Shown: positions 3,101 through 59,809, numbered from the stretch's first letter. The stretch: DNA of 64,000 nucleotides from Macrostomum lignano (GCA_002269645.1 NIVC01001403.1:186001-250000); one strand, 5' to 3'. Translations and numbers: made by a program. Notes: generated by a model not told the origin, from the sequence alone.

Positions 3101-6100
3101 GAGTTGCTTAGCAATCCATTCTCTAATCTAAGTTAATCTCAAATGCTCTAATCGTCATGACCGTTGGTTACTTTGAATTACCTAGCTAATCCCTTAGTAG
3201 GTCACCTGACTCACCTAATCCCTTAGTAGGTCACCTAGCTCACCTAATCCCTGAGTAGGTCACCTGACTCACCTAATCCCTTACTAGGTCACCTGACTCA
3301 CCTAATCCCTTAGTAGGTCACCTAGCTCACCTAATCCCTGAGTAGGTCACCTGACTCACCTAATCCCTTACTAGGTCACCTGACTCACCTAATCGTTTAG
3401 TAGGTCAGCTGACTCGTCTAATCACTTAGTAGGTCACCTGACTCACCTAATAGTTTAGTAGGTCAGCTGACTCACCTAATAGTTTAGTAGGTCAGCTGAC
3501 TCACCTAATAGTTTAGTAGGTCACCTGACTCACCTAATAGTTTAGTAGATCAGCTGACTCACCTAGTCACTTAGTAGGTCACCTGATGACTCACCCAATC
3601 ACTTAGTAGGTCACCTGACTCATCTAATCATCACTTTGTAAATCACCTGACTCATCTAATCACTTTGTAGTTCACTTGACTCATTTCGATCTTCAAAATT
3701 CCTACAGTAGGTCGCATAACCTCAAGCTGGCAACTGATTTTCATCTCTCCCATCCAACATAGGTGGCCGCCGCGCTGCTCTCCGACCACCCGGAAGAAAC
3801 CAGCCTGCGGATTGGATCGCTTGAATTGCACCGTCTTGGCCAGCTGCTGCCGGCTCAGATTGCCAGCGGCCAGTTCCACTGCAGCCGGCACATCTACCCC
3901 GTCGGCTACTTGGCCACCAGGATCTACTGGTCCTGCCGTTACACCGCCGTTCGCTGCCGCTATCTTTGCCGAATCGACGAGCGCGAAGGCGCCCCCGAGT
4001 TCAGCGTCACCGTGTCCGAGACCGGCCATCCGGACGAATCGTTCACTTCGAACACCTGCGACGGTGTATGGCGTCCTCTGTTGACCCGGATTCACAAGCT
4101 CAGATCCTCGGCCGGCCTCATCAACATGTTCCCCGATCACATCACTGGCGAGGACCTGTACGGCTTGACCGAGCCAAACATTTTGCGCGCAGTCGAGTCT
4201 CTGCCGGGCCTGGACGTGTTGAAAGACTACGCCTTCAGGTTTGGCCGGATGCAGCTCATACCGGAGATGCCGCTGGCTATTAACCCCACCGGCTGCGCCC
4301 GCTCCGAGCCCAAGATGAGGACCTACTTTTGCAAGTGAGTCTGTCTAGCTGAAAAGGCGACCTAACTGCCGTTCCTGGGTGCTGGTAGGGGTTGCGGGTT
4401 TATGGTTGAGGTTTAGGATTTGTGGTTGAGGTCTAGGGTTTATGGTTGAGGTCTAGGGTTTATGGTTGAGGTGTAGGGTTTATGGTTGAGGTGTAGGGTT
4501 TATGGTTGAGATGTAGGGTTTATGGTTGAGATGTAGGGTTTATGGTTGAGGTGTAGGGTTTATGGTTGGGTGTAGGGTTTATGGTTGGGTGTAGGGTTTA
4601 TGGTCCAGGGCTAGGGTTTATGGCTCAGGGCTAGGGTTTATGGCTCAGGGCTAGGGTTTATGGTTCTGGGCTGGATTTATGGTTCAGAGTTAGGGTTTAA
4701 AGTTTAAAATTGAGGTCTCTTGCCCGTGTGGCCATGTGGTCGGGTTCTTCGTCTGGTTTTGGTCTGTTTAGGCAAGGTTTTTGTACATGTATAATGATAG
4801 TCGGTTTATGTATGTACAATAACATGATGACATTCAGTTGAATTTAGAAACGTTATCGCACCTAATCAGACGATCCATGCTAATGCATTATTAACGGCAT
4901 TTACCTGCAGGCCGCACGCTCTACAGACAGTGTCCTCAGCCCGGGGTCACCCGTCGCAGTCCGCCGCATCGCATCCGCATCACCATACTCATCTCGCGCA
5001 TCATCACCAGCCAGACTCCCTTGCGCAATCGGCCGCTCCCTACTCTAAGCAGTACAGCCACTCCAAGTCCTCTCAGTACAAGCGCCTGCGCACCGAGTGG
5101 CAGCAGAATGTCTACTTGGGCCGGTCCCGCATCCAGGGCCTCGGCTTGTTCGCCACTCGGGACCTGGAGAAGCACTCCATGGTTATCGAGTACATCGGCG
5201 AGGTTATTCGCAATGAGATTGCTAACAAGAGGGAGAAGCTGTACGAGTCGCAGGTGCGTTTTTACCGTTTGAGATCACTGTGTTGCGAGGGTTGGTTGAC
5301 GTGGTCACATCGATCCCCAGGTGTGTCTTATCGATTCCCTCAGATCCCCAGGTGTGTGTCTTATTGATTCCCTCAGATCCCAAGGTGTGTGCCTTATCGA
5401 TTCTCTCAGATCCCCAGGTGTGTGTCTATTGATTCCCTCGACCCTCAGGTCCTCAGGTGTGTGTTTCTTATCGATTCTCTCATATCTCCAGGTGTGTCTT
5501 ATCGATTCCCTCAGGTCCCCAGGTGTGTCTTATCGATTCCCTCAGGTCCCCAGGTGTGTGTCTTATCGATTCCCTCAGGTCCCCAGGTGTGTGTCTTATC
5601 GATTCCCTCAGGTCCTCAGGTGTGTGTTTCTTATCGATTCTCTCATATCCCCAGGTGTGTCTTATCGATTCTCTCAGGTCCCCAGGTGTGTGTCTTATCG
5701 ATTCCCTCAGGTCCCCAGGTGTGTGTCTTATCGATTCCCTCAGGTCCTCAGGTGTGTGTTTCTTATCGATTCTCTCATATCCCCAGGTGTGTCTTATCGA
5801 TTCTCTCAGGTCCCCAGGTGTGTGTCTTATCGATTCCCTCAGGTCCTCAGGTGTGTGTTTCTTATCGATTCTCTCAGGTCCTCAGGTGTGTGTTTCTTAT
5901 CGATTCCCTCAGGTCCTCAGGTGTGTGTTTCTTATCGATTCTCTCAGGTCCTCAGGTGTGTGTTTCTTATCGATTCCCTCAGGTCCTCAGGTGTGTGTTT
6001 CTTATCGATTCCCTCAGGTCCTCAGGTGTGTGTTTCTTATCGATTCTCTCAGGTCCTCAGGTGTGTGTTTCTTATCAATTCCCTCAGGTCCTCACTTGTG

Positions 6101-6891
6101 TGTTTCTTATCGATTCTCTCAGGTCCTCAGGTGTGTGTTTCTTATCGATTCCCTCAGGTCCTCAGGTGTGTGTTTCTTATCGATTCTCTCAGGTCCTCAG
6201 GTGTGTGTCTTATCGGTTCCCTCAGGTCCTCAGGTGTGTCTTATCGATTCTCTCAGATCCCCAGGTGTGTGTCTTATCGATTCTCCCAAGTCCTCAGGTG
6301 CTATCAGATACCATCCCACTCGATACCCAGGTGTCTGATTAATCCCATCCCACTGGTGTCTGATTGATCCCATCCCACTGGTGTCTGATTGATCCCAGCC
6401 CACTGGTGTCTGATTGATCCCATCCCACTGGTGTCTGATTGATCCCATCCCACTGGTGTCTGATTGACCCCATCCCACTGGTGTCTGATTGATCCCATCC
6501 CACTGGTGTCTGATTGATCCCATCCCACTCAGATCCCCAGGTGCCTGATTGATCCCATTCCACTCAGATCATCGGAAGCCCCAGACTCCCCAATGGCCGG
6601 TCTCCTCTCCTGCAGAACCGCGGCATCTACATGTTCCGCCTTGACGACGACTGGATTGTCGACGCAACAATCTGCGGCGGTCCGGCCCGCTACATCAACC
6701 ACAGCTGCCAGCCCAACTGCTCAGCTGAGGTTGTGGACGTTGATCGCGGCCGCAAGATCATCATCTTGGCCAACAGGCGAGTTGAGAAAGGCGAAGAGCT
6801 CACCTACGATTACAAGTTCGACTTTGAGGACTCCGGCAGTAAGATCCCCTGTCTGTGCGGCGCGCCACACTGCCGCAAATGGATGAATTGA
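102..6891 (+). CDS. KMT2C/D: KMT2C/D (MLL3/4, trithorax-related) H3K4 methyltransferase, 3' portion; exons 102-754, 1449-1985, 2589-3044, 3763-4334, 4911-5253, 6616-6891
   Basis: GT-AG exons with consistent phases (0,0,0,2,0). Encode the KKWKGLRW motif, extended PHD (CVLC..HLNCALW..CSHC..C..YHLAC..CAAH), FYRN/FYRC, WIN motif GCARSEP, SET (GLGLFA, RYINHSC, ELTYDYKF) and post-SET CLCGAPHCRKWMN*. The gene begins upstream of the window. Confidence 0.95.
1080..1325. repeat. Intronic minisatellite, 20-bp unit gtcccaatgcctctagatag
   Basis: About 12 tandem copies. Confidence 0.95.
2070..2420. repeat. Intronic minisatellite, 23-bp unit gggatttccctattctaaatatt
   Basis: Tandem copies, degenerate at the edges. 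Confidence 0.9.
3185..3680. repeat. Intronic minisatellite, 29-bp unit tagtaggtcacctgactcacctaatccct
   Basis: About 16 tandem copies. Confidence 0.9.
4400..4700. repeat. Intronic minisatellite, 20-bp unit tatggttgaggtgtagggtt
   Basis: About 14 tandem copies. Confidence 0.9.
5310..6300. repeat. Intronic minisatellite, 31-35-bp unit ctcaggtgtgtgtttcttatcgattccctcaggtc
   Basis: About 29 copies; produces the spurious repetitive ORFs 5321-6367 and similar. Confidence 0.95.
6330..6565. repeat. Intronic minisatellite, 25-bp unit gtgtctgattgatcccatcccactg
   Basis: About 9 tandem copies abutting the previous array. Confidence 0.95.
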
Positions 6892-58140: not shown

Positions 58141-59809
58141 ATATGGCCATGGGAGATGGGAAGAGAGCATAGGAGTGGTAAACCATACAGGACCATACAG
58201 GGCTTGACTGTAAAAATATTAGAGGCTGACTGCATCGCCCCATCTATTGGCAAAAATACGCAGCAAGTGGGTCTATCGGCAGGTGCGCAGGACTGCAGTG
58301 CTTAATGATATTGCTAAACGAACTGGGCCACACCCATCTCTACCAGACGCCTCTGTCTGTCTCTGTGTGCAGGCAGCGATACTGCATAATGACTATGCAC
58401 TGTATTTATGGACTAAAACGCTTTTAATTGCTCTCAAGGTTTTGCCATATTAGCATGGTACTGATAAGGCAAGCAACTCTTTAACTTGAATTCTGAAAGT
58501 TTTTCTGATAACAATTTCAAGCAGGAAATATTTGGCTTATTTTTTCTGCTATCATATCCCGAATCTAAAATTGCGCGTTAAAATTATTTGAAGCATTTGT
58601 TATAATGTGCGCTCAGTTTTGAAAATGGATTGCGGATGTAGTAAGTTTTAGTAACAGAAAATAACACAATAATTTTAGAAAGTGACTGTTCCTGGCAACA
58701 GAAAAGGCAGGCATTAAGTGAAACTACCCATATCGTATTCAAATTTAGCTCGTAGTTGAATGTCTTCTATGTTGCACAGAGTTGGTTGAGCAAATTTCAC
58801 ACGGATGGGGCTACTTATTACTTGAGCGATTATTTATTAGTACATATAAATCACAGTTTATAAGTAATTTATCGACCATTTTTTCTGCGATTTACTGTCA
58901 AATAGTAATAGAAATCATGGCAGTGCTTGCTGGAGTACAGGCTATTGTTGGCTTGTCTTCAACCCGGGATATTGTCAGCTTGCAGCAGACAGCTCATTGT
59001 CAAGCCCTCGGCTGAGCACATATATACCAGCATGATAAAACAATCAAGTAGAAAAACGACTCCATTAAGTTCCGAAATCACAGGTCCGTTGAGACATAGA
59101 CAAAGCGACCCTCGGAACCGATGGTGGAGTCGGTGCTGATTGGTCGAGACGGTCGGGTGTACTGCGACTCCACGTCCCCAGTGTCGAATGCGTCATTCAG
59201 GACGCCGTCTGGGCTGTACACGTTCGAAGCGCGGGTGTACGGCGCTTGGCTGGGCGGTGTTCTGGAATTCGAGTTTGATGGGGATTGATTACTCTGTGAT
59301 GTAACCTTAAGAGACGAATTCTTAAGGCTGTTTCGCTTCTTCAGTGAGACTGCAAGACGACAGTCTCCTTGGTTTGATGTATCTTGAGACTCCCATTTTT
59401 GTAAGATTTTTTAAGAAACAAATTAAACCTTAAACCGGAAGCCGAACATTCTGCTGTTGATTCAAAGACTGCATATCTGACGACTACTACATGTACGAGT
59501 CACTATTGTTAGTTTCCTACAGATTACAATGTTTAACGTAGAAAAGCATGAGCCCCTGATATTGCATTTTACTACTTGGTAAATCAACATGCCAACTATA
59601 ATAGTTCGCATCCCGGCAACCCTTATTTTGATATTTTATTAGAGGCAGGAGGCTGGGTGCACCCTGGCGCACTTTAAGCGACATTGTCACACAACCATCG
59701 AGAGGCATTGCTGCCCATTCCGCCGACTCCCCTGAGCAGGCACACAAGCGCGCGGATACGTACGCAGTCATACGCACAGGCACACACTCACACAGGAGTG
59801 TACAGCGGC

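Follow-up and report, generated by a model that had tools for sequence, protein, structure and literature searches.

Over-represented TA-N4-TA words in a Macrostomum lignano locus as probable excision footprints of TA-targeting cut-and-paste transposons

Why does one palindromic octamer, TACATGTA, recur across a 64-kb stretch of the flatworm Macrostomum lignano (GCA_002269645.1, contig NIVC01001403.1:186001-250000; hereafter the window, also labeled L001 and L006), and what left it there? An earlier note on this DNA had taken the word for a probable excision scar of Tc1/mariner transposons. Here, we analyzed the window together with three homeologous M. lignano loci (L002, L003, and L004) and a further locus of the same species (L005), which amounts to ~175 kb of M. 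lignano sequence, and we consider it probable that TACATGTA and a second word, TACGAGTA/TACTCGTA, are excision footprints of TA-targeting cut-and-paste transposons of the Tc1/mariner type that have since moved away. The mechanism is a known one; what is new is how dense the record is and how scars cluster upon scars. The second scar word had escaped the earlier note, as had the enrichment of a related palindrome, ATGTACAT.

The over-representation of TACATGTA in the window is confirmed. The word matches 15 times where 0.5-0.7 matches are expected, a frequency ~25 times the expectation: dinucleotide-preserving shuffles give a mean of 0.49 and a largest value of 2, Markov models of orders 0, 1, 2, and 3 give 1.05, 0.51, 0.49, and 0.50, respectively, and models that follow composition locally (in 1-4 kb blocks) give 0.55-0.72. 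The enrichment that the earlier note had proposed to measure against a Markov background thus persists, within the window, after correction for composition. Every coordinate listed in that note holds, and one site that it had missed, at 21495, is added here. The 15 matches correspond to 13 independent loci, the overlapping pair at 25023/25029 being counted as one locus and the matches at 26664 and 30925 as one event, because they lie in the identical long terminal repeats (LTRs) of a single gypsy retrotransposon and were inherited with the element. Both members of this LTR pair, already recorded by the earlier note, are present, and they represent a single inherited occurrence, ancestral to that young gypsy copy, rather than two events. 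The matches in the window are as follows.

4784..4791, TACATGTA as a putative +6 footprint TA-CATG-TA, with unique flanks, 85 bp past the minisatellite 4396-4699
8356..8363, TACATGTA with unique flanks
14582..14589, TACATGTA directly after TACATA, the +4 Tc1-type footprint word (TACATATACATGTA)
21495..21502, TACATGTA
24341..24348, TACATGTA within ATG-TACATGTA-CAT, a putative scar in a ATGTACAT context, in the cluster downstream of a LITAF-like gene
24468..24475, TACATGTA abutting TACTCGat, a one-mismatch copy of the second scar word
25023..25036, doubled TACATGTACATGTA, two overlapping TACATGTA, read as a scar at the TA of an earlier scar
26664..26671, TACATGTA at position 115 of the left LTR (26550-26812) of the young gypsy
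30925..30932, TACATGTA at the same position of the right LTR (30811-31073) of the young gypsy
32577..32584, TACATGTA in the reverse transcriptase (RT) open reading frame (ORF) of an older gypsy, directly past the catalytic YxDD motif
35319..35326, TACATGTA in the right flank of the older gypsy
35956..35963, TACATGTA, separated by one base from the TACTCGTA at 35965
45969..45976, TACATGTA, 43 bp from the TACGAGTA at 45926
59488..59495, TACATGTA whose last TA runs on as TA-CGAG-tc, forming a 12-mer, ACATGTACGAGT, common to the insertion at L004:757

As minisatellites inflate many other 8-mers, each 13-mer recurring in the window was masked, which removed 24% of its length; this fraction, made up of minisatellites for the most part and of other internal repeats, dominates naive k-mer rankings. 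In the masked window, TACATGTA is the top over-represented 8-mer by a wide margin (9 against 0.5 expected), and the survival of these 9 sites argues against a repeat family as its carrier. The signal is also sharply defined: TACATGTA accounts for 15 of the 29 occurrences of ACATGT, its one-mismatch variants are merely 1.85-fold enriched, and its flanks share no consensus. Beyond the window, the word is found in M. lignano at L002:1575, which falls outside the L002 portion alignable to L003/L004, and, doubled, at L005:22787. As for controls, a cichlid locus holds one TACATGTA against 0.5 expected and no TACGAGTA, and 24 kb of the scallop Pecten maximus (L007, LR736840.1) hold five dispersed TACATGTA (2162, 4585, 6350, 19789, and 23425) against ~1.3 expected. 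Going by this scallop locus, TACATGTA may be enriched in other invertebrate genomes too.

How such a word could arise is best seen at 32577, where it interrupts a protein whose relatives can be aligned. Host coding sequence is avoided by the sites, and the sole coding match is this one, in-frame in a retrotransposon copy that itself hosts a second gypsy. The elements concerned are the following.

about 25438-34599, older gypsy, with LTRs (~25438-25550 and 34463-34599) about 97% identical and target-site duplication GCCCT
26550-31073, young gypsy, nested within the integrase region of the older one, with 263-bp LTRs 100% identical, target-site duplication TCAGG, and an intact 1303-amino-acid pol ORF (26886-30797)
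31746-34421, minus strand, RT/RNase H ORF of the older gypsy, 891 amino acids, comparator for the 32577 site

The right LTR of the older element also carries a 27-bp insertion. On the coding strand, the site reads GAC GAC GTA CAT GTA CTT, that is DD-VH-VLL, directly past the catalytic YxDD. Aligned by MAFFT to 15 gypsy pols, the window copy alone has two extra residues at this point. Closer relatives were then collected by a full HMMER search across 1.8 billion representatives, and among the 20 closest (38-57% identity), the only indel in 142 columns was again these two residues, VH, present in no sequence but the window copy. The alignment of homologues that the earlier note had called for therefore exposes a private 6-bp insertion. 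Removal of these 6 bp gives GACGACG-TA-CTT, with a single TA, and because the ancestral sequence is GACGACGTACTTCTG, the insertion is not a tandem duplication of adjacent bases. On this alignment, TACATGTA at 32577 is a 6-bp (two-residue) insertion at an ancestral TA.

The same build recurs in a second word. When all TA-NNNN-TA words of the masked window are ranked, TACATGTA comes first (9 against 0.5) and TACGAGTA/TACTCGTA second (5 against 0.75); in the full window, TACGAGTA is found 6 times against 0.99 in shuffles. In the 22-kb locus of L002-L004, it occupies 4 independent sites against ~0.25 expected, three of them common to all three homeologs and one specific to L004. The occurrences in the window, including a longer variant, TACGCTCGTA, are listed below.

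35965..35972, minus strand, TACGAGTA/TACTCGTA as a putative +6 footprint TA-CTCG-TA
37628..37635, plus strand, TACGAGTA
37779..37788, plus strand, TACGCTCGTA, a +8 variant TA-CG-CTCG-TA, the same 10-mer being found at L004:16775
43617..43624, minus strand, TACTCGTA in one 48-bp unit of a 42-bp tandem array (43404-43748)
45926..45933, plus strand, TACGAGTA between the convergent ODF2-like and kinase genes
53305..53312, minus strand, TACTCGTA, ~140 bp upstream of the kinase gene
60566..60573, plus strand, TACGAGTA, 52 bp past the stop of a piggyBac transposase ORF

Three comparisons set a filled site beside an empty one. L004:757 reads ACATG-TA-CGAG-TA-TATGG where its homeolog in L003 reads ACATG-TA-TATGG; L004:16775 reads AGA-TA-CGCTCG-TA-AAC where both L002 and L003 read AGA-TA-AAC; and in the array at 43404-43748, six 42-bp units end in ..CATTA when one 48-bp unit ends in ..CATTA-CTCG-TA. 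By these three empty-versus-filled pairs, TACGAGTA/TACTCGTA, or its +8 form TACGCTCGTA, is shown to be an insertion at an ancestral TA. Together with 32577, all four compared sites (32577, 43617, L004:757, and L004:16775) thus show TA-N4(6)-TA against TA, 32577 being the sole TACATGTA site among them. The earlier note's proposal that its motif marks 6-bp insertions at an ancestral TA is accordingly borne out at 32577; for the other TACATGTA loci, it is supported by close analogy with TACGAGTA/TACTCGTA and its +8 form. Since some scars are common to three homeologs and others private, the process was active both before and after the recent genome duplication.

The two scar types are also clustered. 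Of the six exact CGAG-type sites, two have a CATG-type neighbor no more than 50 bp away (p about 0.007): at 35956, where TACATGTA-g-TACTCGTA is read, and at 45926/45969, 43 bp apart. One-mismatch copies abut TACATGTA at two further places (24468, TACATGTA-TACTCGat; 59488, TACATG-TA-CGAGtc), the CGAG insertion of L004:757 is placed at the TA of ACATGTA, and the doubled TACATGTACATGTA is found as the same 14-mer in two unrelated loci (25023 in the window and L005:22787). The densest cluster, of 4 or 5 TACATGTA within 700 bp, lies 570-1260 bp downstream of the LITAF-like gene. Beyond the nested retrotransposons, this cluster resumes at 35319-35972. We read the clustering as preferential re-insertion at or beside earlier scars.

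A simple scheme could produce these patterns. A TA-targeting cut-and-paste element of the Tc1/mariner type would insert and duplicate its TA; upon later excision, staggered cuts would leave either flank with a few bases from the element's termini, and end-joining would seal TA + CATG + TA, for a net gain of 6 bp. The CATG could stem from 2 + 2 bases of CA..TG ends, as in Tc1/Tc3, or from the self-complementary 4-base overhang of an element with CATG..CATG ends; speculatively, such an overhang would account for the near-uniform +6 product. A second family, with Minos-like CGAG..CTCG ends, might leave TA-CGAG-TA / TA-CTCG-TA as well as the +8 TA-CG-CTCG-TA, which resembles a junction between an incomplete left end (CG) and a complete right end (CTCG). 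New insertions would seem to prefer the TAs of, or beside, old scars, hence the doubled and side-by-side scars. The donors in this scheme are hypothetical, and as a hop adds one scar without changing the number of element copies, scars can come to exceed donors by a large margin.

Known systems offer close likenesses. In a Tc1/mariner footprint, 2-4 bases from the start or the end of the element remain between the two TAs of the duplication (PMC6943129), and Tc1 and Tc3 of Caenorhabditis elegans combine TA duplication, CA..TG ends, and 2-base end remnants, so that TACATGTA would be their full 2 + 2 product; it has been cited as a rare Tc1 footprint (PMC3520976). The canonical footprint of Sleeping Beauty is TAC(A/T)GTA (PMC6943129), which likewise retains terminal bases between duplicated TAs after end-joining. 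However, Sleeping Beauty keeps three bases (+5), and TACAGTA/TACTGTA are not clearly enriched here (9 against 4.9). Among seven-base words, TACCATA/TATGGTA is the top TA-NNN-TA word of the masked window (7 against 2.1 expected, numbers too small for a judgment). This word has the form of a mariner (Mos1-type) 3-base footprint. For the second scar word, the likeness is to Minos, a Tc1-family element of Drosophila hydei with CGAG..CTCG ends. Its 6-bp footprint reportedly consists of TA plus four terminal element bases, and such ends would yield TACGAGTA/TACTCGTA. Minos has been tried for transgenesis in M. lignano, and the scars are native rather than transgene-derived, because the sequenced DV1 line is not transgenic and three scars are common to old homeologs.

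Several observations weigh against excision footprints of Tc1/mariner type, and the first concern the donors. No Tc1/mariner transposase was recovered by Pfam among 108 ORFs of at least 110 amino acids in the window and L002-L005, nor by tblastn over the same sequence with the Sleeping Beauty, Mos1, and Tc1A transposases, a rough screen; a search of the same ~175 kb for TA-flanked inverted-repeat elements found none either, and neither a Tc1-like nor a Minos-like element was found in it. This bears out the earlier note's statement that the window holds no donor element. The families with CA..TG termini that it had suggested looking for did not turn up in these ~175 kb. Intact Tc1/mariner copies with TA duplications are known in M. 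lignano, where DNA transposons make up 3.05% of the assembly, but the one published family (MS, DD37E) has CTGGG ends, which match neither scar word, and is therefore not the donor. Of the earlier attribution to Tc1/mariner, insertion at TA by donors now gone thus largely stands, when the superfamily and the end sequences of the donors are conjectural, no donor with matching ends having been found in this sequence. Two candidates were set aside. The apparent mini-element TA-CAGTATAG..CTATACTG-TA of L003/L004 is just low-complexity GTACAGTATA sequence, and P-nucleotide footprints of hairpin-forming (hAT-type) excision were ruled out because palindromic 8-mers are not generally enriched (249 against 207 as a class).

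Other points on the same side concern the words themselves. In C. elegans, Tc1 footprints are mostly TACATA/TATGTA, of +4 (PMC12632400), these making up ~78% in the soma where TACATGTA is rare, whereas the +6 word dominates in the window. There, TACATA/TATGTA is found 28 times against 14, ranking fourth of 2080 six-mers under Markov-3 and unremarkable under Markov-4, and its ~2-fold enrichment is shared by most TA-NN-TA words, which are mildly enriched alike. TACATGTA is absent from the three homeologous 18-kb stretches shared by L002-L004, so that its density is very uneven. The direct comparison covers 1 of its 13 loci, 32577, the others being putative footprints, and the motif of the young gypsy LTR lies ~45 bp upstream of a TATA-like box, a placement that would suit a regulatory site equally well. 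Finally, ATGTACAT, the phase-shifted palindrome of a (CATGTA)n period, occurs 13 times in the window against 0.56 expected, at 5 independent loci there and 2 elsewhere (one in L005 and one site conserved in three homeologs), an excess that scars do not predict. Its sites are the following.

Window: 24338-24351, 24465, 24715, 24853, 25026, 26373, 35908, and 43525-43748
Elsewhere: L002:18060 (equivalent to L003:17981 and L004:18070) and L005:3549

ATGTACAT might be a favored insertion target, as in the 24341 scar inside ATG-TA-CAT, or the mark of another process; the former would leave its excess unexplained.

These same points feed the alternative that fares best, namely that the words are true 6-bp insertions at TA of another making, through another TA-targeting superfamily or through repair that inserts one short palindrome of fixed sequence. 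The want of a matching Tc1/mariner donor, a near-uniform +6 unlike the +4 spectrum of Tc1 in C. elegans, and the hint of a further process in the ATGTACAT excess all lean this way. However, a duplicated TA around 4 (or 2 + 4) bases, in two discrete classes, is the published form of Tc1/mariner footprints, and the +8 TA-CG-CTCG-TA resembles the joining of a partial left to a full right end. No other superfamily is known to pair TA duplication with such footprints, and we regard this alternative as unlikely.

It is also quite improbable that TACATGTA is the binding site of a dimeric transcription factor, kept by selection or spread by LTRs. The precedents are real enough, from the preference of the Irx homeodomain for this word to the identical and highly abundant palindromic 8-mer of Phytophthora, described as motif-1 (Seidl 2012, PMC3520976), as M93 (Roy 2013, PMC3597505), and as AM-20, which is bound by PsMyb37 (PMC11134190), and validated there as a promoter element. 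Perfect palindromy, sharp specificity, the position of the young gypsy LTR copy, and the 4-5 copies grouped downstream of the LITAF-like gene would suit such a site as well. In Phytophthora, however, the word is a promoter element of infection-induced genes, for which a footprint origin was rejected by the authors, whereas the host here is an animal, outside the oomycete lineage of motif and factor, and one TACATGTA is an insertion within coding sequence. The window's long ORFs poor in introns, its gypsy and piggyBac elements, and its kinases could suggest an oomycete, a reading refuted by homology: the kinase ORF matches M. lignano proteins, and the window is 100% identical to contig NIVC01001403.1. 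As the window is flatworm DNA, the Phytophthora motif is an analogy only. Moreover, the 32577 insertion, absent from all relatives, splits an RT catalytic region and not a promoter; the second word, which is not palindromic, has the same TA-N4-TA build and is polymorphic in the manner of an insertion; one-mismatch variants show hardly any enrichment, an uncommon pattern for such a site; and neither shared flanks nor a gene-proximal pattern is seen in the annotated part, where few genes are annotated.

A slippage origin, in which TACATGTA would be a fragment of a cryptic (CATGTA)n microsatellite amid a general excess of alternating pyrimidine-purine sequence, strikes us as very unlikely. Words of the same period are indeed enriched, ATGTACAT foremost (5 of its 13 occurrences being independent) and CATGTACA/TGTACATG with 5 on their own, and runs of 12-15 bases exist at 24337, 24464, 25023, and L005:22787. 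Yet the phases are strongly unequal, TACATGTA having 10 independent runs when ACATGTAC/GTACATGT never occur without it; the longest array in ~175 kb is 15 bases; the 32577 insertion does not duplicate its neighbors; and slippage can account for neither TACGAGTA nor TACGCTCGTA. As for an artifact of composition, repeat family, or assembly, the window is 24% internally repeated and minisatellite-rich, with many inflated 8-mers, and 2 of its 15 matches are one LTR pair, but such an origin is barely conceivable given an excess that outlasts 13-mer masking, local composition models, and Markov orders to 3, the unique flanks, the recurrence of TACATGTA in independent contigs, and three TACGAGTA sites common to three homeologous contigs.

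The remaining content of the window gives the setting of these sites. DNA-transposon coding traces are limited to a piggyBac ORF and a hAT remnant, and the features are as follows.

12587-13267, plus strand, hAT dimerization domain remnant
23216-23772, plus strand, LITAF-like zinc-finger gene with a PPQQQGY repeat region and one 77-bp intron (23417-23493)
37164-45361, plus strand, ODF2-like gene
47473-53166, minus strand, annotated kinase gene
about 53.6-57.7 kb, BK-channel exons
60625-62337, minus strand, piggyBac-type transposase ORF, 570 amino acids, apparently intact, with DDE_Tnp_1_7 and a zinc finger
5321-6300, 15470-16505, 17383-18945, 46258-46992, 49885-50514, and 62805-63831, examples of minisatellites

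Minisatellites, with units of 20-42 bp, are very numerous, and several are intronic or readable as long ORFs. The kinase gene adjoins a convergent ODF2-like gene both in the window (37164-53166) and in L002-L004, with 70-77% protein identity, and the pair is an older segmental duplication, besides the recent three-fold redundancy of L002/L003/L004 (95-98% identity). Scans of the window for RXLR/Crinkler effectors gave nothing convincing, Rfam and tRNA scans of the window were empty, and look-ups for identical products returned no match for the piggyBac ORF, the kinase ORF, or the pol of the young gypsy.

If TACATGTA and TACGAGTA are excision footprints, one consequence concerns motif discovery: since TACATGTA truly serves as a promoter element in Phytophthora, one and the same enriched palindrome can arise in opposite ways in separate lineages, which calls for caution. 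More tentatively, and at a strength that we would put no higher than a possibility worth stating, TA-targeting elements may preferentially re-insert at scars, whether left by themselves or by one another, so that (TACATG)n-like arrays and mixed ones, in which TACATGTA abuts TACGAGTA, build up, and so generate a self-reinforcing, major mutational signature; scars might then reach the germ line unusually often, through germ cells derived from neoblasts with soma-like excision and end-joining. If true, this would amount to a fossil record, open to counting, of the cut-and-paste turnover of families now rare or extinct, of the order of 10^5 events when one scar per 5-10 kb is extrapolated. Footprints are textbook knowledge, but experiments usually show them at single loci, when here they seemingly rank as the top dispersed 8-mers with no donors nearby. 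Should this hold genome-wide, word counts and subgenome alignments would measure, for a flatworm that regenerates, its past cut-and-paste activity and germ-line end-joining; they would also recover the termini of transposon families that are extinct or unknown, and would account for some in-frame two-codon insertions and short palindromes.

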